Shown: positions 1 through 63,836, counted from the first letter of the stretch. The stretch: 64,000 nt of DNA from Paragordius varius (GCA_964247055.1 OZ176057.1:3162001-3226000), one strand, 5' to 3'. Notes: a model not told the origin generated them from the letters alone. Program-made: numbers and translations.

Positions 1-1038
1 AAAAAAATGGCGGTAAATAACTTTAAGATGATGATTTTCTTACAATTTTACATTTTTTTAAAAAAATGGTGTAATGTTCCTAATATATAGACTAAAGAAA
101 GCATATATATATATATATATATAAATTCGGCTTAATAACTTGCACAATATTTAAAATATTCAAATTTTAAATCGCTTTGGGATATAAAACTACCCCAAAA
201 GGTAAGGAGTGTTTGCCATTTAATTAGTTTTGATGTACAAAAATTAAAACTAAAATAATCACATTTATGTTAAACTACTGCATAGATTTAAAACACATGC
301 CAGAGTATTTAAATCATTTTTTATGCCATATTTATTTCAAACATATATTTTTTTAATGTTACTATCTTTTGATTGCAAGATATGTTTATATGCTTTTCTT
401 CTGACTGGTATAATCTTTTTGGGCATCTATGTAAATTGTCACTTTTTCAAACGGTTAGTTCGGTTAACATTTTTAATTGCCTTAGAATCTTATGTAATTA
501 CAATATTCATTTTAATGGTTGCTTATTTCACACTATTGTTAGGCATTCTCTAACACAGTAGTGTATGGAAAAAAGACAACAAAATTTTGAATAAACATTT
601 TTTCCTATCTTTTTCCATACTACACTACTGTGTTGCAAATTGCCCAACTATAGTGTCAAATAAGCAACCATTAAAATGCATACACTAATGTAATTTTTTA
701 ATTTAGTATACAATTTTTTATACTAAATTAGAGCAAAAATTAAAATCATACCGACAAAACGTAAACTCAAAGGATAAATATTTTTTTGTAAAAAGGCAAC
801 AACCATACTTTCCAAACGTTTCATTTTCCTATATAATCTAGGCGGTTACAATAATTTAACATTGACAGTTTTCCACCAATTTACTTTTATCATCATTATT
901 TTGTAACTCAATTCGTCATATTTTAAATCATTTTATGTTTGAAATTATTTTTGTCATTTTCTATTAATACATTTTTTTACAATTTGATTTATACCATAAA
1001 TTTTAAACAAAAATAATATAATATAATTTTAAATTAAC

Positions 1039-1538
1039 TATACCATTTACGATTCAAATTCACCATTGAACAATTCGAATACCCTCGAACAATTCAAGTT
1101 CACCCTAAAATAAATTATGTGTTATTTAAAATTAAAAATTACCCATATTTTTTTATATTTTTATAACATGAAATCTCGTTTAAAATTAATATAATACTGA
1201 TAAAATAATAAACTATTCCATATAAATATATTTTATATTAATAATGAGTTATATTATCCCGAAAACATATAATTTATTTTTAAGGGGAATTTGAATTGTT
1301 CAAGGGTGAATTTGAATTGTTTGAGGGTGACTTTGTATTATTTAAGGGTGTTTGAATTGTTTGAGGGTGAATTTGAATTGTTCAAAGGTTAATATGAATT
1401 GTTTGAGGGTTAATTTAAATTGTTCCAGGGTGAATTTGAAATGTTTGAGGGTAAATTTGAATTGTCCAAGAGGGAATTCGAATTATTTAAGGGGGAATTT
1501 GCATTGTTCAAGGGTGAATTTAAATTGTAAATGGTATA
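1039..1538. mobile_element. MITE family A (foldback; ends TATACCATTTACAGTTCAAATTCACCC; 20-bp subterminal tandem repeats), expanded copy
   Basis: Inverted termini. The right arm has about 12 tandem units of GGGTGAATTTGAATTGTTCA. Confidence 0.85.
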
Positions 1539-2096
1539 TCTCATTTGCACTTCAAGAGTTTCCTTGTACACTCCAAGCTTTTTCAATCAAACCGTGCATT
1601 TATATATTTTTTTATTCTCTTGATAACCAAAAAATCAAAATCAACTTTTAATCATTCAAGAAACCGTGTATCTTTTATTCTTAAAATATATTAGTTTTTT
1701 TAGATTTTAAATGTAATAAAATATCAGTTTGGTTATTAATTACAATTTTTGTTGAAAATTCATAATTGAATATTATTGTTGGATTGGAAAAAAATTGATT
1801 ACAAAAAAGGGGCTTTTAAATGAAATAATTTAAAATGACATATATAACAAATCAAGAAAATTAGTTTAATTATTTATTTAATTAGTTTGGGCTTAAACAC
1901 AACAAAAATATAAATAATTAAATAAATGGCATGGAAAATTTTTGGTTAAATCAAAATATAAAATGATTAAGGACTAATTTGAAATGTTTAAAGACCAACT
2001 TGAATTATTCAAAGACCAACTTGAAATCAAGGACAAACTTATATTGTTCAAGGACACTCTTAAAATGCAAATGGTTTAAAACCTAATTTCCGTTTG

Positions 2097-2165
2097 TTAT
2101 TTTACTTTTTTTCGCATTACATGGATTTTGGTTTATATCCTTAAATTGTGTACTTACATGGCTTT
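2097..2165 (+). pseudogene. Decayed duplicate (pseudo-exon) of Rheb exon 2270-2352
   Basis: CGCATTAC-ATGGA..GTTTATATCCTTAAA..TACATGGCT versus CGCATTAG-ATGGA..GTTTATATCCTCAAA..TACATGGCT. The acceptor AG is changed to AC. Confidence 0.7.
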
Positions 2166-2269
2166 CCGTAAATTTTAAAAAATAAACGAAAGATAATAAA
2201 AAAACATATCATATACCCAATTTCTCTTTCTGTGCTTAATGATCTTTATTTTATTTTTTTACGCATTAG

Positions 2270-4458
2270 ATGGACCCTAGTTTATATCCTCAAAGCTGTT
2301 TTGTTAACATACATGGCTACCTTATAGTTTATTCTATCGCTAATTACGACAGGTAAATTCTTTATTTCAACGTATAATAGTTTTATGATAGCCTTATCAA
2401 CTTATGAACGGATTCAAAGGATGACTGGAAAATCTATGTAATGTATATTCAAATTTTATATGTGATTGGTATGGTTTAAAATATTTCATTGCATAAATTT
2501 TAAAATATATTTTGTCAGTTTTATGTATACATTGTTCGCAAATTTCGATTTTATACAAATAATATTTTTATATATTTACGTTTTTTTTTACACATCAAGA
2601 TAATATAGCAAAATTATGGGGAATATATATATATATATATATATTACATATCCATAAAATGTTTCCTTATTATTTTTTTGTAATTACTTCACATTAAATT
2701 TAAAAGGTCTTTTTCATATTTTTTTCAAATAAATTTGTAATATACACCACCCCGTCCAAATGACACCTGGGAATAACCAAATAATTTAAAACTATTGTAT
2801 GGAAATAGGAAAAATCTATGATAGCGCATTTGTTACAAGGATTTAAAAAATATAATTTTCGATCATTTGTCAAAATTGATCGATATTTGGTATTTTACAG
2901 AGCTTTTAAGAGTTTATTGGATTCGTCATTAAATGAAAAATCCTTATTATTATTATTATTATTTTTGCATTGGTTTTAAGTTAGTTTCTCAATATAAATA
3001 AAAGTTTCAATTTGAATTAATTAATTAATTATAAAACTTAAAAGATTTGTTGTAAAGTCATCAACAAACTAAAGTGCTAGAAGGGTAAGAACTATATATA
3101 GTTGAGATACTTTTAACTGTTTAATAAAAATTATATATTTGAACCTTAGTTAATTTTTTTATTAAATATGACTCTATTTTTATGCGTATATCGTTTTTTA
3201 AAACATATATTATATACCATTTGCAGTTCAAATTCACCCTCGAACAATTCAAATTTATCCTAAAATAAATTATGTTTTTAAATAAATTATGTAATAAAAT
3301 TTTTTTTTAAATGAAATTTTGTTTATTATTATAATAGTGAAATAATCAATTATGCCATAAAAATATATTTTATAAAAATATGATGAGTTATATTAGCCCG
3401 CAAACACATAATTTATTCTTAGGGTGAATTTGAATTGTTCAAGGGTAACAAATGGTATATATATATATATATATATATAACGTTACAAATTTCTATTAAT
3501 CAAACGCTATAATTGTTTTTCACTTAATAATCTATGATTAGAATTAGCAATACTCCATCCCTGTATAATTCGACCCCGAGTCTGACATACTTAAATTTGT
3601 CACCAAAAGCACCTTTGGAGAAAACTGACAAACCTCATGCTTCAGCAACGAAACCGCTTAAAAAATCTATCTCTAACATGAGAGAGCCCACCAAAACATC
3701 AGTTATAACTGAGACTACCAAACTTAAAAATCGGAATGTAAACCATTACGATATAACTGAGAGTGTAGGGATAGATGCATTACACCTAAACGAAATTTTT
3801 CCACAAAACAGGGCAGATGACGAAAAAAATATTTCCAATAATATATTTGATGTTAAAAAAACGCCAAAAACAAGCCAAAATATGATAAGCTCTAGTCAAA
3901 ATGCTTTACATGGGCTTATTGGTACGCCACAACAATCCGATTCTGTGATAAATTCGGCCTATAGGTTGATACTTTTTTTAATGCTATTTTATAAGTTTAA
4001 AGCCTGGGAATCAAGTATATTTTCCTAGTATTCCACGAATTTTATTTGTATACAGTAAAAAACGCAATTAGATGGGGTAAAAATTTTGGTGTTTGTAAAA
4101 ATATGTATAGGTAAAATATATTACAGTAAAAACTGAAATTATACGGACAAAATGTAAAAATATAAAGACAAATATTTTTTCTAAAATAAAACCATACTTT
4201 TTAAATCTTAATTTATTTCATTATAACTTATTATTAAAATTGGCAAAGTCTGAAATAGATATATATATATATATATATTACTAACAGAATCATTTCTAAA
4301 TTTTACAATTGTAACTAAATAGCTTATATAAGAAAAATAAGGTTTTAAAAAGTATGGTTGTCTTTTAGAAAAAAATTTTTGTCTTTATATTTTTACGTTT
4401 TGCCCGCATAATTTTAATTTTTACTGCAATTTATAACCAGCAATTAAAATATATTCAC

Positions 4459-4492
<34 letters not shown>

Positions 4493-4704
4493 ATTATTGT
4501 AGATTTTCGTTTAAACTTTAATTAATTATGAAAAATATGAAATTATAGTTTTAAATAAAACTTAACTTACTACACGGTTTTTAAGGAAGGATTTGTTAAA
4601 TTCCTTTCGTGAGAATAATATATTGTATTGATTCGGACATATTATAAAACGTTTTTGATGGAAATATCGTTTATTTTTTTATTTAATATAAAAATAATTT
4701 GTAA

Positions 4705-4745
<41 letters not shown>

Positions 4746-7700
4746 AAAATGGATTTTTAATATTAGTTTTATATACATTGTTACATACTGTAAATTTATA
4801 AGTCACAGAATCGATTTTACTATATAAAACTTCAACCAAACGCAACATTTTCCATTCATATGGAACTGAAATGTTGCATTTGTTTTAAAAATGTTGTGTT
4901 TGCTTGAAAAAATGTTGCTTTGTACTGAAAAAGGTAGATGCTTTTTTAGAGTTTTTCGCTAATATTATGTTTTTTTTATTTCTCAATAAAATATTTTTTT
5001 TCCCGACTAATTCAAAATCTAATTCTTTGTGCAATTTTTTTAATTAATATTAATGTTATTCCTCATTACAATATATTTTTTGTTATAACGTTTCTATAAA
5101 ACAAGCACTGTTTTGTAGAAATTTTACAATATTGGGTTTAATTTATATATATATAAATATATATAGAACACCGGTGGTTTTTGTTGGAAACAAATTGGAT
5201 CTGCTAGCTCAAAGGTATAACATAATTTTTTTACGATTATCAAAAATATTAAAATATGTGTCATTCAAAAATATTTTATTTACTCAATTAATTAGTTATA
5301 ATATAAAATATTTGATATAAAATGGCAAAAAACGCTAAATAAATATACCATTTACAATTCAAATTCATCCTTTAACAATTCAAATTCACCCCGAACAATA
5401 TAAATTGACCATTGAACTCAAATTAAAATTCACCCTAAAAATAAATTATGTGTTTTTGGGCTAATATAACTCATCATTAATATGAAATATCTATATGGCA
5501 TAGTTTAATATTAATTATGTTATTTTATTTTTAAACAATTTTTTTAAATATAAAATATATAAGTAATTTTTAATCGTAATAAACGCATATTTATTACATT
5601 TTAAATTTGAAATCTTCGAGGGGGAATTCGAATTGTTTGTGGGTTTTTGAAGTGTAAATAGTATATTTCATTTTTTAGAATTGTAAATCAATTAAATTTA
5701 AATTTACCTTTTAAAATCATAAAAGAACATTAAACACGTAAAAATTGACAAATGCATCATATCTTTATAAGATTAAAAAATATGAAACAATTTAATCAGT
5801 TTTTGGAATACATTTTTGAATAAAAACTAATTTACCAAGCGATATGCACCTATCTTTGAATATTTGCAATTTTTATTTTTATTAATTATCGATATACCAT
5901 TTTTTTTAATTTTCACAGGATTAATTTTACTTTTTTTGGGGTTTTAAAAAAATAAGTTTTCATCAGACTTAAAAGATTGACTACAATTTTGATTGACCAA
6001 TAACATATTGTTTTCCTCAACCAGGTCAAGTTGTTTAATGAGTTTTTTTACTCAATATACATAAAATTTTGCTGCAGAACAATTTTAATTATAGCGTTGA
6101 GGAGGTATTTAAGAATAGTGATGATTGGGTATATAGAAGATTTCATGATTATAACAAATATTGTAACAATCCCAACCCAATCATTAAATAAATGTATATG
6201 GCCAACAACTATACTGTGAAGCAGTTTTATAGAATAACATGAGATATGAATAAAGGCAGATTTGGGAATAAACTATCTGCCTTAGATCCCCACATAATTC
6301 CCTAGTTTGATGAAGTTATCTTAAAAATAGAGGCGTGAAATTTTTATGAATATTAATTTGATTTGAAAGACCCATGTAGGAGTTCCTAAAAGTGTAGAAA
6401 CTCTTTTTCTAAATCTTTTTTAATTATTGTTAGCTATTATGCCTTATCACTGTCCCGTTAATGATAAAACACATTCTAGTCTAAATAGTTTAAATTGGTT
6501 AGAGATGACAGGATACTTAGACAATATTATTGACACAATTACTAAAGGGCAGGATTATAAAAACTATTTTATGATTTAATATAATAAACGAAGGCCAATT
6601 TTAAATTACCTTTCCAAAAAATTAAATTAGTTGCCCAAATCACATATAAGAGGCAAGGATTAATTGTCCAATATACTCAAGTCTTGTATTTCATGGTTCA
6701 GGCAACAACTCCCACAAAAGCGAAATTTAATTTTTTGCTGCCATTGAATGATAGTATTCAAACCGCTGGTGGCATATCGACCTAAAACTGCTTTTTTGTC
6801 GCCCTAAACTCCTTGCTAAATTTTTTTAATATATTCATTTTGAGTATAAATATCAGCAAATGTGTCAAACATCTTAAATTTTTTTATTATTATACTAGCG
6901 TAAATCTCGTGCTGCTACGCAGCCTGAGGAAGTCCTTTGGACTTCTGCGAGGGGGGGGGTCATTTTTGATTTTATAAGGAATTTTGGTATGCGGCACGAA
7001 GTTTCAAAATGATTCACATAGTCTCATAAGTTTTCTTAAATTTGGCTCCAAAGGTAAGCTGTATCGATATGATGGCGCAGTTGTAGCCGGGTATCCCCTT
7101 ACCCAGAAGCCATTATAATGGAGTTAGATAAAAAAAATTTGCCTTTATACCTGGAATCAACGTTTATACCTATGGAAGAATGGCTCAAAACTAACATTTT
7201 TTAAAGGAGTAAAAGGCCTATTTAACAGATAATTCAAAAAATCTGCTCGAATTTTGACTTTTTACGGGTAATACTTTAAGCAGCTATTGAACTTATATGG
7301 CCTGATAGGTTTTCTGCAAATTAGCCCCAAAAGCACGCTATTTCGATATGACGGGTCAGTTTTTAGCGGCCAGCTCCTTACCCAGCAGCTATCATCAAAG
7401 AAACGCTTGACTACAATTTTTGACTTTTATCAGGGAATACGTGGAATCCATCCTGAATTTTTACGGTCCCACACCTAGGGCGAAAAATAGATTTAAAAAA
7501 TTATTTTTGGGGACATTGACGGGGGGAGCGGGTAAAAAGAAGGCCTAAATTAAAAAAGCGAGATGAGTATGTTCGGCGCAATCGATAATAAGTAAATTAA
7601 AATCATATTTGAAATTGAATGGACCAACACGTTTTCCAGAAAATGGTCTCAAAGACACGATTTTTGTGGACGTTTTTTTTGAAAAAAATGGCATTTTACG

Positions 7701-8743
7701 GGGATAGCGGGTAAGAGGGCCTAAATCAAAAAAGTGAGTCGACTATGTTCAGCGCGATCAAAAATAAGTGAACAAAAATCATATTTGAAATTAAATGGTC
7801 CAACACATTCTCCGGAAAATTGTATCAACCCGTTTTTCACACGGGGTAGGCCCGAACTGGGCCCCTAATTCCAAAAAGGGCGAAGCTATTGTCGGGACTT
7901 TTATTAATAATTATATTTTTTCGATATTCGGATTCGATTGGGTTCACCGGTTTTCCGGAAACAGATCACAAAGCCAGCATTTTTCATTTTTATAAATATA
8001 TAGATGTTGCATGCACGGCGTATAAGACAAAATAAATATTTTGCGGCCCTTTCAAATTTTTCGCTAAGTATGGTTATTACTGATCTAAAGTAAACTTTAT
8101 CGATATTATGACTCATGAGACATGATAATATTTTTTGTGAGTACCACCATGAATTATTTCATAGATCTTTCAAATAATAATTGACTACTTTTGGATGCCA
8201 ATGCCTCCAATATAGTATATTACAGCGCATGAGTTAAATAACTTTATTCTTTATCGCTTGAAACATTTATATATTTATTTAGTTTGTTTGCATTTTACCG
8301 TATACTATAAATGATTTAATTTAAATTTTTGAAATTACTATAATTACCTAGTTTGATTTACTTTTAAAATTTATTTTGTTTGATTTAACAAATTTATTTT
8401 AAAAATGTGATAATTTAGTTTAATAACGCATGCTTGATTGTATATACTATAATTGATCAGATACCGGGTTATTATTTTTTACCCTTCAAATAATAATGAA
8501 TGAACACAATATTAATATTTTTAATTTTATTAATATTGTGTTAGAACTGTTTCAAAGGAAATGGCTAAAAAGTCTAGCAATAATCTCAAAGTTCCACTCT
8601 ATGAAACATCTGCCAAAACAAACCATGTACTTTTAGTTAACTTAAATTTTTATTAGTTTTCATGTTTAATCCTACAATATTTTATTAATACAATTTTAAT
8701 AATACTTTTTTCAACAAGCATATTTTATATAATTTTTTGGATA

Positions 8744-8782
<39 letters not shown>

Positions 8783-9565
8783 ACACCGATTCTTCAAATT
8801 GATATTTTAAAAAACTAACAAAAACGGTTCTAATTAAAATTATTGCTTTTATCCTAATGAAAATTATATAAATAAGCTAAAATATCCTAATAACATTTAG
8901 TTTTGGAACTACTTGGACGCCATTTTTATTTTACAACATTTTTGCACAATATAGTGTTTATTTGATTCTTAGCCTAAAATTAATTAAGTTTTTTATTAAA
9001 ATCACGTTTAACATTTATATAAACAGAAAATGTGGTATATTTTGCATTATTTTTTTTATTTTGCTTATGCACACATGTCATCTTGATTAATTTTTACCTT
9101 TCAGTTAAGTAATATCTAGTATTTTTGAAATTTTTTAATATATTTCAGTTCTTTTAATGTTATAAAAGTTCAAACCTTTGCCATGTTTTTATTTCTTCCA
9201 TATTTTTAAAAATATTTAAATTTAAACAAGCCTCGGGTATCTAACTACCCCATTTTGAATCGAAGGACTGAAATGAATGCGTTATATCCAATTTTTAATA
9301 TATATGAACTAGCATTTGAGGTTTAATTGATGTTGGCTATTTTAAAAAAACCTATTATTTTAGTTTTAAAAATTAATTGATACTTATATCAAGATATAAT
9401 TCATTGTTATAGAATGTTTGTCATGTGTTTGAAGCCATTCTTTATGAGATTGAAAAACTTGAAATTATAAATCAAAACGTTTCCGATCAAAACGATACTG
9501 GCCAAAGTTATTCGAAGAAATCCATTTCATCATATAAAAAAGATAGCGCTTGTGCAATAAATTAA
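2270..9565 (+). CDS. Rheb: Rheb small GTPase, 5'-partial. Exons 2270-2352, 2381-2437, [candidate cassette 3542-3964], 5167-5214, 8545-8626, 9413-9565
   Basis: Spliced translation MDPSLYPQSCFVNIHGYLIVYSIANYDSFMIALSTYERIQRMTGKSITPVVFVGNKLDLLAQRTVSKEMAKKSSNNLKVPLYETSAKTNHNVCHVFEAILYEIEK...SACAIN*. It has G4 NKxD, G5 ETSAK and a C-terminal CaaX. All introns are GT-AG with consistent phases. Exon sizes 83/57/48/82 equal human RHEB exons 4-7 as I recall them. Exons 1-3 (G1-G3) were not found in the window. Confidence 0.9.
3213..3459. mobile_element. MITE family A
   Basis: TATACCATTTGCAGTTC...AAATGGTATA termini. Confidence 0.8.
3542..3964 (+). CDS. Rheb: Candidate in-frame 423-bp cassette exon of Rheb (141 aa, S/T/N/K-rich)
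   Basis: Lies within ORF 3534-4028. AG at 3540-3541 and GT at 3965-3966 give a phase 2 to phase 2 exon. It joins exon 2381-2437 (..GKS I ISNTPS..) to exon 5167-5214 (..SAY R TPVVFVGNK) without frameshift. Confidence 0.55.
4124..4426. mobile_element. MITE family C
   Basis: TA|CAGTAAAAACTGAAATTATACGGAC...TTTTTACTG termini. Confidence 0.8.
5344..5665. mobile_element. MITE family A
   Basis: Same termini and internal sequence as other A copies. Confidence 0.8.
6895..8004 (-). mobile_element. Non-autonomous Helitron, copy 1 (Rheb intron)
   Basis: The minus strand starts TCTATATATTTATAAAAA and ends in a GCTGC-GTA-GCAGC hairpin followed 13 nt later by CTAG. Inserted in an A|T target with no TSD. 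Similar to 14731-16080. Confidence 0.85.
8783..9297 (+). mobile_element. MITE family B, decayed
   Basis: Internal homology and right-end motif TTTGAATCGAAGGACTGAAATGAATG. Confidence 0.65.
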
Positions 9566-9727
9566 ATTTGATGTGCTCGGAAAAATTAAAGCTCAATGAA
9601 GTTTTAGGGGTTATTGTTGTCGCGAAAAAAAATTGATGTGATATGTAAATATTTTATGGAATAAGTCGCCAAAAAAATTTATGTGATATGTAAATATTTT
9701 ATGGAATAAATATATTTTTTATATTTT

Positions 9728-12700
9728 GAGAAAATCGTAGTCTTTTTAGACATTCTCTAGCCTGGTGCAGCGAATAAGGTACCCTCACCTCTGAGTTAAA
9801 GGGGTTGGTTTATAAGGACATATAATCCGTAAAACCTTGCCTCAATCACAAAACCATGCAGAAACGACTTACAAAAATGATTGATGATAATAAAACATCT
9901 ATTTCAAAGCGAAATTTTAATTTTAATATAAATGATAATATATATTATGATAATGCTAGTACACCTATAAATGCAAATTATATAAATAATAGAAATAAAA
10001 ATAATTCAAAAGCAATAATAAATAAACCAGGTACAAATGAACAACCAAAAATAAAAATGAGATACAAGAATCTATATAAAAACTTCAAATCTATATCGGA
10101 ATCATTTAAATTGGCTCTTGGAATGTTGGAACAATGGTTAATAAGCAATGGCTGGTAATAGATACGGTGCGAAACTTAGATTTAAACATATGCTCTTTAC
10201 AAGAAACTCGATATAAAAATGCAGGTATAAAACACTTTGATGGTTATTCATTACTATACCAAGGTGGGAACAAAGGACAATCTGGCGTTGCCATAATGAT
10301 GAAAGAAACACATCGACAAAACCTAATTACCGTGACCCGTCACAGTGATAGAATTATTCAAGCTAGAATGATATACAACAAATTGATCCTCAATGTTACT
10401 TCCGTATATCACCCCAAAAAGGCTTGCCCGATAAATGCAAGCTGGATTTTTGGGATCAGCTCTATCAAATATGTTCCAATATACCCGAAACAGACTGTAT
10501 AATGATTGGAGATTTAAATGCACATGTTGGAAGCAGCGAAGGTTTTTCTGGTATACATGGAGGATAGAACTTTGATAATCGGGACAAAGAAGGAGAAAAT
10601 GTTTTAGAATTCTGTGCACAGCTCAGCGACTACAGTTAGCAAACACTTTGTTCACCAAAAGCAAAAATAAACTGATTACATACACTTCTGGCAATAATAA
10701 TATAACAATAGACTACATCATAACTAGCCAACACATTCGAAAATATCTGGTAAATACAACCACTTCTAATTCTGAAACACAGCATAAAGTTTTAACATCA
10801 ATTTTTAAATTTAACTCAAGGCCTTTCAATCATAAAACCAAACCTAGAGTTAATATACACAAGTTTAAAAAACCTGATATAATGAAAAATTTCAAAAAGT
10901 CGCTTAACTTAAACATTGATAAAAGACTCCTGGCAAAGTTTAAGAAGCAATACGATTGAAAATGTAGAAAAATGGTGTGGTAGAAGAAAGAGCAAAGCCC
11001 AAAAGAAATGGTGGTGGGACGATGCAATTAAGCCATTACTTAAAGAAAAGGCGCGTTTGTATAAAAAATGGAAGAAATCGAAAAGAGAATACGACAAAAC
11101 TGAGTATTACAAATACAACAAAATGGTACAAAAGGAAATAAATAAATTAATGAAAAGGCTAAAGATACTGCCGATAAATTCGAAAAGGAAATCCAAAATA
11201 ATAAAATTTTTAAACATATGAAACTTTACAATAATAACAAAAAAGATATACCAACGATTAATGTATAAAAGATAATAATAATAATTTACAAATACAACCA
11301 GAATTAATTAAATCCATATGGCAAAAATATATGGAGCAAAATCTAAACAACCCTGTAACACCCATAATAAATTCTGACAGAGATCCCTGTTGTGGTCCAT
11401 TAAGGACATTCACAATACAAGAAATTGAAATTGCTTTAGACCAAATGAAATCAAACAAGGCATCGGGCCCTAGTGAACTATGTTTTGATGTCATTAAATT
11501 AATACCCAATATATCCATACTTCTAACAAATTTATTTAACAAAATAATAGTTGAAATGAAAATACCACAGACTGGGAAAAAAGCATTATATTTCCCATCT
11601 TCAAAAATAAAGGAGATATCCTAACCTGTTCCTCATACAGGCCCTTAAAACTTTTTGAACATGGGTTAAAAAATTTTGAAATATGCCTCAAAAATCGTAT
11701 CGTCCAGCTCATATCAATTAACAATGCAATTCGCCTTTTCAGCGGGTAAAAGCACAATCGATCCAATTTTCTTACTCAGATAAATACCGAGCACAAGGTC
11801 TTAAACTATTCCACCTTTTTGTCGATTTAGAAAAGGCTTAAGACTCAGTACCTAGAGCACTAATAATAGAATCACTGCGCTACAACAACGTAGATGAATA
11901 TACCATGAAGTTAGTTATATTAATCTACACTAACTCAATCAGTTGTGTTCTTACACCTGTTGGGAATTCAGAGTATTTTAGTATAAATACTGGGTTGCAT
12001 CAGGGGTCTGTCCATAGCCCATTTCTTTTTATAGCTATAATTGATTACATAACAAAAGATATTAAAGACGGTCTAGCACATGAAATTCTTTACGCAGACG
12101 ACCACATAATCACTGCAGAAGATATTTCAATACTCGAAAATAAATATCTAATATGGTCAAAACAATTACATAAACACGGTCTTAAAATCAATACAAACAA
12201 AACTAAAATTCTAATCACAGGAGATTAACATAAAACTATAAAGTTCCCATGCCCAGTGTGCACCACTGAGGTTTGTTGTACAAAATGCAGAAATTGGGTC
12301 CATAAAAAATGTTCCAACATAAAAGGAAAGTTAATTAATAATAATAATTTTATTTGCACACCATGTGCTTTATCAATACCACTGCCAATATCGAATCCAC
12401 GTACTTTAAACTTTAATGGAGACAAACTAGAAGTTGTAACATCTTTTCCATATCTGGGCGATTATATATCATCTGATGGTTCTTTGAGGGATGCCATTGC
12501 TCATAGAATCAGATAAGGATGGGCCAAATTCAATCAATTAAAATATATTTTAACTAATAAAAATATCAAATCGAATCATAAGATAAAGATTTACAAAATG
12601 GGAACAAGACCTGCTATGACATACGCTACAGAAACCTGGGCCCTTACAGCAACAGACCTAAATAGACTTACTAGAGCTGAAAATCACATGCTCAAAATTT

Positions 12701-13005
12701 GCAACAATAATTTGATAATACCATAGAAGAAGATGAACCTCTAGCTCTATTCATCCAGCGAAATCGATTGCGATATTACGGACATATTCAACGTATGAAT
12801 TCCGATAACTGGGTACAAAAAATACAACATTTAAATATACCCGGCCCAAACAGAAAAGGCCGCCCTAAACTCACATGGTCCAAACAGCTGACCCAAGATC
12901 TATCACACTTCAATATTGAACACAAACAAGTCTTTGATAGAACATTGTTCAGAAAGTTGGTGCATGGAAACCCCAGATACCCTGGGACCTAAAATGGATG
13001 GATAG
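9728..13005 (+). mobile_element. Full-length decayed RTE-clade non-LTR retrotransposon (APE endonuclease + reverse transcriptase + PHD-like finger)
   Basis: Frameshifted fragments carry IGSWNVGT, CSLQETR, IGDLNAHVG, TIDYII (APE), KWWW, KASGP, GLHQGS, LYADD (RT), FPYLG, ATETW, YYGHIQR and RKGRPKLTW. About 3.3 kb, with a short ATGG/ATAG repeat tail. A possible 7-bp TSD ATATTTT at 9721-9727 and 13006-13012 is weak. Inserted about 160 bp after the Rheb stop. Confidence 0.9.
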
Positions 13006-13836: not shown

Positions 13837-14730
13837 CCATAAATAAATTTTAATTATGGGAAAATTAAATGTTTGGAAATTAAAATATACTATTGAATTT
13901 GATGTAATAAAAATCATGTATACAAATATGTCCTAATTCAATGTTAAAAATAAACTAATCATTAACTTAAATTTAACTGAATATTCAATAATAAATTGTC
14001 ATAAGATAAAAAATTTGCTTATATAAAGAAGGTTGCCTTCGCTTGAAAAAATGTTGCATTTGAATGAAAATGTTGCTTTTAACTAAAAAAATGGTGTACT
14101 AATTCCTTTGCTTTTGAAACAAAACCAAGAAAATTTTAAAACTAGCAGTCAAAAAGTTTTAATATTTTATTATATAAATAGCATAAATTTATCAAACATA
14201 TTCTTTTGATTTGGTTTTCTTACCACCAATCCTTGCATGTAATTTGAGAGAATGCGATTCGAAATTTGGATTTTCAAACTTTTGAGTTGTAAATAAAGGT
14301 AACAGCATATTTTCAAACAAAAATATTATCGGAATTATAAGTACAAAATTAAACAGAATCATTTTTCCTTGTATGGTATATTACACCACAACAAATAGCT
14401 TTAGGGATTTATTTTATAAAATAAGGACGTTTACAAAAATAGTAATAAATATTACATTTTTGACATTATTTTTAGCCTATAAAAACAAGTATGGTCATAT
14501 TTCTCGAAAGAGTTTATAAAATATATTTATTTCAGGGATATATAAGCTAATAAATGATTATCAAAAGTGTATCTCACAGTAAAGAGTCTACGTTCATTGC
14601 AATTTTGGGTAAAATAAAGGGCTATCTTCATTAATATAGTTTTTATAATTAAAAAACATTTTTTTTAAAATTAATATATATATGGATGCTTAAATAAATA
14701 ATATAAATGTATGTATTTATTTATAATAAA

Positions 14731-16080
14731 CTAGCGTAAATCTCCTGCTGCTACGCAGCCAGGAAGTCCCTCGGACTTCTGAAGGGGGCGGGGCATTTTT
14801 GATACAAGCAATTTTATTATGCGGCACGAAGTTTTAAAATGATTCACATAGTCTCATAAATTTTCTGAAATTTGGCTCCAAAGGCATGCTGTATCGATAT
14901 GATGGCGCAGTTGTAGGCGGGTACGACCCACTACACATAGGCAAATATAAAAACGTATTTAGATAAAAAAATTTGCCTTATAACTGGAATCATCATTCAT
15001 TCCTAATAGTTTATGGAAGAATGGCTTCAAAACTAAATAATAGTTCAATAATAGCGCATTTTTCAGGGCGTAAAGGGCCTATTTTACGGCTAATTTATAA
15101 AATCCGCTCGACTAAAATTTTCGACTTTTTACGGGTAATACTTTAAGCAGCTATTGAACTCATATGTGATAGGTTTTATGAAATTTAGCCCCAAAAGCAC
15201 GCTATTCCGATATGACGGGTCAGTTTTTCGCGGGGAGCTCCCTTCTCAGCAGCTATCATCAAAGAAACGCTTGACCAAAATTTTTGCCTTTTAACAGGGA
15301 ATACATAGGATCCTTTTTGATTTTTACGGTCTCATACCTTGGGCGGTAGATTCAAAAAATTATTTTTGTGGACTTAATTTTTTTGAAAAAAATGGCATTT
15401 TACGGGATGAGCGGGTAAAAAGAGGGCCTAAATTAGCGAGCCGACTATGTTCGGCACAATCGAAAATAATTAAACAAAAATCTTATTTATTGATTGGTCA
15501 ACACGTTCTCCGGAAAATTGTTTCAAAGACGCGATTTTTGTGGACTTGTGTTTTTAAAAAAACCGTTTTTTACACGGGGTGGGCCCGAAACGGGGCCTAA
15601 TTCAAAAAGGGCGAATCTATTGTCGGAGCATTCATTAATGATTATATTTTTTCGACATTCGGATTTGAATAGGTCTACCGGTTTACCGGAAACAGATCAC
15701 AAAGCCACATGATGGATTAGTTTTTTAGCGGGTAGCTCCTTACCCAGCAGCTATCATCAAAGAAACGCTTGACTAAAATTTTTGCCTTTTTACAGGGAAT
15801 ACGAATCCTTATTGAATTTTTACGGTCTCATACCTTGAACGAAAAATAGAATCAAAAAATTATTTTTGTGGACTTTGTTTTTTGGAAAAAAAAGCATTTT
15901 ACGGGGAGAGCGGGTAAAAAGAGGGCTTAAATTAAAAAGCCGACTATGTTCTGCGCAATCGAAAATATGTAAACAAAAATCTTATTTGATATTGTCCAAC
16001 ACCTTCTCCGGAAAATTGTCTCAAAGACACGATTTTTGTGGACTTGCGTTTTCAAATTTCCATTTTTATAAATATATAGA
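14731..16080 (-). mobile_element. Non-autonomous Helitron, copy 2
   Basis: Same TC...hairpin-CTAG termini and A|T target as copy 1. About 240 bp longer because of an extra internal sub-repeat near 15710-16040. Confidence 0.85.
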
Positions 16081-17663: not shown

Positions 17664-47513
<29,850 letters not shown>

Positions 47514-62555: not shown

Positions 62556-63836
62556 ATGAATGTCATCATAGAAATATCAAGTTTTAAACCTTTGTTAACC
62601 CAAAATCCGGCCGAAACATTTTGTGTATTCTATATTCGGTCACTTCTATTTTTATCCTTTTTTGCATTATTAGTTAATAGTTATGTCCTGTACGTTTTAT
62701 TAATCAAAATTAAAACGCCATATCGCCCATACTATTTTTTACAATGTATAACGGTTGTAAATATATTAATTAGTATAAATACCCTAGTCACAGTTAGTCT
62801 TTACTATATAGTTGGTGGACACTTTGCTCCTAACTGTATACTTATCAATTTTTTGACCAAATTAGTCGTTTCTATAAAACTTATATTGGCTATGCTTAAT
62901 TGTTACCTCATCTTAATGTTATTTGCGGATCGGCTCTATGGACTGATATGTTTTACTAGATTACGGTGGCTTAGAAGTCAAAAATTTTATATACTATCAC
63001 CGTATATCTTGTTTTTCATCATATCTATTCCTCACATAGTTGATTACCGATTGAGTGATGTTTATATGGTACAAACATTAAATTCCGATATAGTTTACAA
63101 TGTTTTAGATTGCAAAAGTGAATCTGCATATGGTACAATATTAAACAATACAAGTGTAACATCTATGAAAAATCATAGCCTACCAATCAAAATTCCCCCT
63201 AAAATACCCCTTTGTCTACTCTACCATGGCAAATCAAGGTATAATGTTCAATATGTCCGCCGAATTATAATAAGTTATGCAGTAATAATAGTAACATTGG
63301 CTATTACCCTGACCGTAATGATTTATGTAGTTGTTTTTTACCTCCTGAAATATAAAAAACGGAGATCCACGGTATTTGCCGATAAAAGTCCGCATGTAAT
63401 TAAGTCTATCATCCTGGCTACTGTCGGAAATACTAGTTTTTCACCGCTGAAAAATGATAAGTCAAATAAATCTTTGACACCTATTTTAAATAACTTCTAT
63501 GGCGTTAATCGAATTCGCCAGTGGAATAGAAAAATACAACGAAACAGATTACCTCCTGTTTTCCAAAAATCAATTCAAAAATTTTTTTGTCTGTACCTAC
63601 TCATTTTGGGCCATTTCCTTATGATAGCTCCTTCATATATTGTTTATATATGTTTTAGTCGATATTATGTTTTGCGAATGGAACCGCCCATAAAACTCCT
63701 TTACGCAAAACCGATAACAAAAATCATTAAACTTTTATCACTATTTTATACCATTATCTATGTTTTATGTGATCCAAACCTACGAAAGGTATTTAAAAAG
63801 TCATTCTACCCCAAAAGTCAAATTAGATGCTGCTGA
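62556..63836 (+). CDS. Intronless divergent class A (rhodopsin-like) GPCR, orphan, 426 aa
   Basis: Seven hydrophobic segments. TM1 Asn (LLVNS), a DRY-like DRL motif preceded by a TM3 Cys, an ECL2 Cys, a long basic ICL3, TM6 Pro (MIAP), and TM7/helix 8 YTIIYVLCDPNLRKVF. Confidence 0.8.
   Translation: MNVIIEISSFKPLLTQNPAETFCVFYIRSLLFLSFFALLVNSYVLYVLLIKIKTPYRPYYFLQCITVVNILISINTLVTVSLYYIVGGHFAPNCILINFLTKLVVSIKLILAMLNCYLILMLFADRLYGLICFTRLRWLRSQKFYILSPYILFFIISIPHIVDYRLSDVYMVQTLNSDIVYNVLDCKSESAYGTILNNTSVTSMKNHSLPIKIPPKIPLCLLYHGKSRYNVQYVRRIIISYAVIIVTLAITLTVMIYVVVFYLLKYKKRRSTVFADKSPHVIKSIILATVGNTSFSPLKNDKSNKSLTPILNNFYGVNRIRQWNRKIQRNRLPPVFQKSIQKFFCLYLLILGHFLMIAPSYIVYICFSRYYVLRMEPPIKLLYAKPITKIIKLLSLFYTIIYVLCDPNLRKVFKKSFYPKSQIRCC

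Follow-up and report, generated by a model that had tools for sequence, protein, structure and literature searches.

The window analysed here, a 64-kb stretch of the Paragordius varius genome with a GC content of 24.9%, carries on its plus strand a gene for a Rheb-like GTPase that, by exon-by-exon reading, has eight exons and 203 codons. Exon 1 opens with an ATG at window position -2109 and is followed by a 26-nt intron; exon 2 encodes GKTSLLQQFLNQSFSSIYDPTLET and exon 3 encodes ..NIKLNHQEYEITLLDIGGQ. Exon 4 (2270-2352) is separated by a 28-nt mini-intron (2353-2380) from exon 5 (2381-2437), which encodes the end of helix alpha3 (...RMTGKS). The phase-2 intron 5 that follows (2438-5166; 2729 nt) is the host of the ORF with which this work is concerned. 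Beyond it lie exon 6 (5167-5214), encoding strand beta5 and the G4 motif NKLD, exon 7 (8545-8626), with the G5 motif ETSAK, and exon 8 (9413-9565), which ends in the CaaX-like sequence CAIN and a stop codon (9563-9565). Translation of the exons gives a complete set of Ras-type G motifs in the expected order, namely GYPSSGKT, DPTLET, DIGGQ, NKLD, and ETSAK. In searches of the PDB, RhebL1 was the top match for exon 2, and all 14 matches for exon 4, which aligned with human Rheb residues 68-89, were Rheb or RhebL1 chains; exon 7 as query gave no match. Judged from exons 2 and 4 searched singly, the host gene is closer to Rheb than to other members of the Ras superfamily, and the exons flanking intron 5, on which the preliminary description of this locus had relied, proved to belong to a real eight-exon gene. 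A second Rheb gene was not found when the organism's own genome was searched with exons 4 and 8.

Like canonical Rheb (human RHEB, 184 aa, PDB 1XTQ and 6BCU; RhebL1, 3OES), the encoded protein has an N-terminus of the type MPTKSRK..GYPSSGKT, a DPTxE switch I, the DxxGQ, NKxD, and SAK motifs, and a C-terminal CaaX-like box. It differs in its length of 203 aa and is divergent at two sites that are usually invariant, the G3 motif, which is DIGGQ (window about -986 to -972) and not DTAGQ, and the CaaX box, which is CAIN (9551-9565) and not CSVM. CAIN shows the Cys-a-a-X pattern, but substrates of farnesyltransferase do not usually have Asn as the X residue. Counting on from the exon 4 alignment, the junction of positions 2437 and 5167 falls between human V110 and Q111, a point in the alpha3-beta5 loop eight residues ahead of N119-K-x-D122. 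Removal of intron 5 as a whole gives a protein that matches human Rheb collinearly over residues 1-122 at the least, with no indel before the 2437/5167 junction. The preliminary description had placed a possible insertion between alpha3 and beta5, ahead of NKxD, and had held that its omission leaves an ordinary Rheb; both statements agree with this alignment. A degenerate echo of exon 4, comprising its acceptor and first ~55 nt at ~75-80% identity, lies ~165 nt upstream at 2098-2175, where the AG has become AC.

Three mini-introns were mapped in Rheb and in the DOHH gene of the same window, at -2060 to -2035 (26 nt), at 2353-2380 (28 nt), and at 56172-56149 on the minus strand (24 nt). The last of these corresponds to an exact 8-residue gap relative to human DOHH (PDB 4d4z) at the metal-site motif HEAG/EALG. 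Such mini-introns coexist in the same genes with introns of kilobase size.

Intron 5 of Rheb contains, on the host strand, an orphan ORF of 164 aa (3534-4028) that runs from an ATG at 3534, one codon downstream of an in-frame stop, to a TAG at 4026-4028. The stop-free stretch in which it lies (3531-4025; 495 nt) is the second longest among the six frames of the window, the longest being that of a 426-aa ORF at 62556. First-order Markov simulations produced a stretch of this length once in 200 whole windows and once in 5000 local segments of 600 nt that had the same composition. The 495-nt ORF is thus longer than expected by chance, in agreement with the preliminary description, which had called so long a stop-free ORF improbable. 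The portion of interest is a candidate in-frame exon at 3542-3964 (423 nt, 141 codons; alternative start 3548), hereafter the block, which is stop-free, a multiple of three in length, and in phase 2 on both sides. The earlier claim that the AG and GT at its ends are compatible in phase with both flanking Rheb exons was checked and found correct. However, an in-phase AG and GT close to the edges of such a block are expected by chance with a probability of roughly 2-17% and so are not rare, and the other Rheb exons, at 48-153 nt, are far shorter than the 423 nt of the block.

Several MITE-like inverted-repeat elements occupy the Rheb introns, at 1030-1650, 3212-3460, 4116-4434, and 5343-5640; the second is just upstream of the ORF and outside it, and the third, with inverted arms of 65 nt, is downstream of it. 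Some of these elements have the common motif CAAATTCACCC...GGGTGAATTTG, and they often adjoin (TA)n runs. The sole Rfam candidate in positions 1-10000 is a sub-threshold hairpin at 544-643 that matches plant MIR1507 on both strands. Its 31.7 bits fall short of the gathering score of 73, and it probably represents a MITE hairpin rather than a microRNA. At 6600-8100 and at about 14700-15700 there is a dispersed repeat of high GC content (36-40%) and without a long ORF; it has >2400 first-look candidates genome-wide, at 77-90% identity, and much of Rheb intron 6 is taken up by one of its copies. A frame-shifted LINE with endonuclease and reverse transcriptase (9826-12989, plus strand) follows just past the 3' end of Rheb, and on the minus strand, some 8-11 kb ahead of the first Rheb exon, lies a Gypsy-type LTR element with gag, protease, reverse transcriptase, and integrase.

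The ORF itself is not a repeat. Its only match in the 110.6-Mb genome of the organism, both as DNA and as protein at E<=10, is itself, whereas a control repeat from the next intron gave 2414 first-look candidates in the same genome. As the ORF is single-copy and has no Pfam match, an origin from a transposon or other repeat was rejected; similarity to a transposon, raised beforehand as a possible flaw in the exon proposal, was looked for and not found.

Four independent signals indicate that the block is coding, or was coding until recently. Its GC content, at 32-35%, exceeds the 22.5% of the intron, and on the plus strand there is a strong excess of A over T and of C over G. Base composition differs between codon positions (chi-square p 0.002-0.005) when the null is formed by sequences simulated as open. 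The encoded residues are rich in Ser, Asn, Thr, Lys, and Pro, and the first 143 residues have no Cys or Trp and a Phe content of 1.4%, against 10% in background open stretches. A codon model was also trained, within this one window, on 2.7 kb of exons from PKC, DOHH, and Rheb, with the introns of these genes as the contrast; it gives the block +0.236 bit per codon, or +33 bits over 140 codons. By comparison, 132 decoy open stretches average -0.30 +/- 0.19 bit per codon, and real exons, each left out of training in turn, range from -0.10 to +0.44. The ORF ranks first among the open stretches of the window in total codon score. The other frames of the block are positive as well (0.09 and 0.13), so that composition explains part of this score.

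Unsupervised ML segmentation of base composition, with two boundaries allowed between 2900 and 4700, places the block at 3546 to 3959/3965, with support intervals of 3519-3559 on the left and 3933-3976 on the right. The right compositional edge is thus at the proposed donor, ~60 nt upstream of the ORF stop. The sequence past 3965 scores as non-coding in both possible frames; in the ORF's own frame the last 20 codons (LILFLMLFY...) are T-rich and intron-like at -0.20 bit per codon. This change-point on 3965 is the best single argument for a real exon end there, as opposed to an arbitrary position within a longer ORF.

AlphaFold, run on the single sequence, gives residues 1-135 a pLDDT of ~50 and no secondary structure, in keeping with the earlier suggestion of a disordered loop, and the lack of structure makes insertion into a surface loop sterically plausible. 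It also predicts a confident helix at residues 136-162, most of which lies in the tail that would be lost if the donor at 3965 were used. This helix is among the features that would be accounted for if the ORF were instead an orphan gene in its own right, nested in intron 5 on the strand of its host. It would run from ATG 3534 to a stop at 4026 or 4069, and its product would be small and disordered, about 165-170 aa long, and would end in a short tail of hydrophobic or helical character. Such a gene would explain why the ORF has its own stop and its own ATG one codon past an in-frame stop, a placement whose probability by chance we estimate from base composition at ~5-17%, and why the ORF body scores as coding. 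It gains further credit from the second ORF of this window that has no relatives in a word search (426 aa) and from a GT...AG pair at 3965-3995 that, with 31 nt and a start 431 nt after the ATG, resembles the mini-introns of this genome and whose use would carry the frame to a stop at 4069-4071. However, the coding-like composition stops at ~3960-3965, well short of either stop. Both C-terminal tails are non-coding in score, at -0.20 bit per codon for the direct one and -0.29 for the 24 codons that would follow the mini-intron, which leaves the mini-intron continuation weakly supported. In addition, the ATG has no Kozak-like purine at -3, and a codon-model scan of the same strand found no other coding-like unique block nearby, a result on which a nested gene with several exons was rejected. 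Nested genes in animal genomes are more often on the opposite strand to their host, which we count against a nested gene here. In having a start and a stop of its own, in its want of relatives, and in its wholly intronic position, the ORF is like known nested intronic genes and orphan ORFs of de novo origin. It differs from them in being on the host strand, in losing its coding character at an in-phase GT far ahead of the stop, and in that the block edges match the phase of the host intron. We therefore regard a nested gene as unlikely.

Whether the edges of the block have the appearance of splice sites was judged with position weight matrices built from 17 homology-mapped introns of Rheb, PKC (minus strand, 47.5-17.7 kb), and DOHH, all from this one window. 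The mapped donors have A at +3 in 13 cases, T in two, and G and C in one each, and only 4 of the 17 have G at +5, a degenerate 5' splice-site consensus. Both donors with T at +3 are forced by frame and homology, one in DOHH (GAG/GTTGAA; 56071, minus strand) and one in PKC (CAT/GTTAGT; 34607, minus strand). The former, which had been cited as the precedent for the candidate donor, is the only GT at that place that keeps the frame. The PKC gene also contains a claim of the same kind as the present one: exons flanking a 6.5-kb intron (gene segment 27590-34125, minus strand) are collinear with human PKC-alpha (..SFGITELL / ..VDGWFKLL), and that intron holds a proposed Asn-rich insert exon at 32475-32647.

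The candidate donor of the block, TAG/GTTGATAC (3965-3972), has its GT (3965-3966) in phase; GT is rare within the ORF, and no other in-phase one occurs between 3599 and 3995. As TAG/GTTGAT the candidate scores 3.9 bits, a value that falls to 0.3 bits when training omits the DOHH site. With real donors spread from -3.2 to 9.2 bits, it belongs to their lower half, and 19% of decoy GTs score as high. On the other side are two candidate acceptor AGs, at 3540-3541 and 3546-3547, both in phase and six bases apart, with decoy-like scores of -5.6 and -2.1, respectively; 4 of the 17 real acceptors are equally poor. The first AG is preceded by an AG-free zone of 98 nt with 60% pyrimidines, and in both respects it resembles real sites. 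The median length of this zone is 61.5 nt at real acceptors against 19.5 nt at decoys, of which 5% reach 95 nt. Overall, the splice signals are compatible with use and carry little information either way.

The same signals could serve other Rheb transcripts, in which the block would be an alternative first or last exon. As a first exon, transcribed from an internal promoter, it would be translated from ATG 3534 and spliced from 3965 to exon 6, yielding the block joined to the C-terminal third of Rheb; a first exon would explain why there is an ATG at the 5' edge as well as a GT where the coding-like composition ends on the 3' side. As a last exon, it would be joined to exon 5 at 3542 and read through to the stop at 4026; the resulting Rheb would be truncated, with no NKxD, SAK, or CaaX box, and here the AG-free zone of the acceptor fits. 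However, each product would have an incomplete G domain, which, from what is known of the Ras fold, should neither fold nor bind nucleotide. The last-exon product corresponds to the truncated, possibly membrane-anchored form put forward in the preliminary description. The hydrophobic tail then noted is present, but its run of ~9 consecutive hydrophobic residues is too short to span a membrane, and the tail scores as non-coding. Either arrangement seems improbable to us.

Searches for relatives of the ORF in Pfam, by word search, in the ESM Atlas, and in NCBIfam returned nothing usable, and phmmer found no credible homologue among 1.84 billion representative proteins. Its single match, P0001, was rejected as a translated tandem repeat, the E-value being the sum of eight weak matches to 45-residue pieces at about 30% identity each. 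Exact look-ups of the ORF and of a neighbouring ORF were likewise negative, in a collection that may lack records of this genome. When the open stretch around exon 6 was used as the query of a word search, so as to detect partial transcript-derived Rheb fragments, no match was obtained. The lack of relatives is weak evidence, because such records may be missing and because the neighbouring 426-aa ORF is also without a match in the word search. The latter (62556-63836, plus strand) is a single-exon ORF, very hydrophobic in the manner of a multi-pass membrane protein or receptor, with a codon-model score of ~0, and may encode a lineage-specific membrane protein.

A further possibility is that the block is non-functional, either a recently dead exon or gene fragment or a GC-richer island that is open by chance, and is never translated. 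That no homologue appears among the 1.84 billion proteins, apart from the spurious tandem-repeat match, and that Pfam, the Atlas, and NCBIfam offer nothing usable is consistent with this, as is the finding that the other GC-rich islands of the neighbouring introns are plain repeats. The lone PDB match of the ORF, to the ABC ATPase 4yms_J (E 0.012; collinear over residues 34-127), would fit a version in which the block is a badly decayed ABC-ATPase relic. However, this version fails targeted profile tests. In the own-genome scan PF00005 misses the ORF, NCBIfam returns no ABC family, and a custom profile made from 28 nucleotide-binding domains of bacterial ABC ATPases gives 0.9 bit, a score reached by 2.8% of shuffles. 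The lysine of the Walker A motif GxxGxGK[ST] is also missing, the position reading KPHASATKP, and an ABC-ATPase relic was accordingly rejected. Against a non-functional block in general, a neutral frame soon gains stops in DNA this AT-rich, and openness of this extent has a local frequency of only ~1/5000; the periodicity and codon usage argue for selection or a very recent origin; and, in distinction from the neighbouring islands, the block is not a repeat. A block without function is, in our view, rather doubtful, if less so than a nested gene.

The reading that we tentatively favour, at something short of an even chance, is that the single Rheb gene uses 3542/3548-3964, a lineage-specific coding segment, as an internal exon in frame with its neighbours; the readings considered above leave only a small remainder for any other. 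We prefer it because the compositional edges coincide with an in-phase AG and GT, because the sequence past the donor scores as non-coding, because the acceptor has a long AG-free zone, and because the block is on the same strand as Rheb. Against it weigh the decoy-like acceptor motif, the ATG that opens the ORF, and the fact that the skipped form of Rheb misses nothing. In an in-frame exon of this kind, the donor at 2438 would be paired with the acceptor at 3541 (or 3547), and the GT donor at 3965 with the exon 6 acceptor at 5166, whether constantly or as an alternative event. Inclusion would add a disordered stretch of ~141 residues in which Ser, Thr, Asn, Lys, and Pro abound. The G domain of Rheb would remain complete and would carry a long flexible alpha3-beta5 loop on the face away from the switches, whereas skipping would yield a Rheb of canonical length. 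The analysis establishes the open frame, its coding-like statistics, the matching phases, the place of the junction in the fold, and the plausibility of the candidate sites in this genome; their use by the spliceosome, like any function of the loop, is inferred.

To our knowledge, no Rheb with such an insert has been described, and relative to canonical Rheb the proposed isoform would stand apart by its 141 extra residues in the alpha3-beta5 loop. The closest parallels are found elsewhere. The low-complexity loop inserts of Plasmodium and Dictyostelium are likewise rich in Asn, Lys, Ser, and Thr, free of structure, and set into a conserved fold, in genomes of ~25% GC like that of this window. 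Those inserts usually lie within a continuous exon and are confirmed in mRNA, whereas the insert proposed here is a separate candidate exon flanked by two introns of >1 kb. Similarly, Rho-family GTPases have an extra segment peculiar to the family, the Rho insert, which lies on the surface of the G domain away from the switches and serves as an effector platform. In contrast to the block, which encodes 141 disordered residues, is placed one loop earlier, and is lineage-specific, the Rho insert is a helical segment of about 13 residues between beta5 and alpha4, ancient and constitutive. The loop of the proposed isoform contains five Ser/Thr-Pro sites. With somewhat greater reserve than we attach to the exon itself, we suggest that inclusion of the 423-nt exon might produce an isoform of the mTORC1 activator whose 141-residue loop acts as a splice-regulated platform for docking or phosphorylation.

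Should the block turn out to be a nested orphan gene or a dead relic, it would be of modest interest. Splice sites in this organism carry little information, consisting of GT plus A/T with no G at +5, and the contrast in composition between exon and intron may therefore decide splicing; the block in intron 5 of Rheb displays just such a contrast. The locus is thus a clean case in which to ask whether open, coding-like intronic blocks without relatives are real exons. Rheb is a small switch that activates mTORC1, and its length is almost invariant across eukaryotes. If the in-frame exon is real, a large optional loop in its G domain would be an unusual way of adding regulation to that switch.
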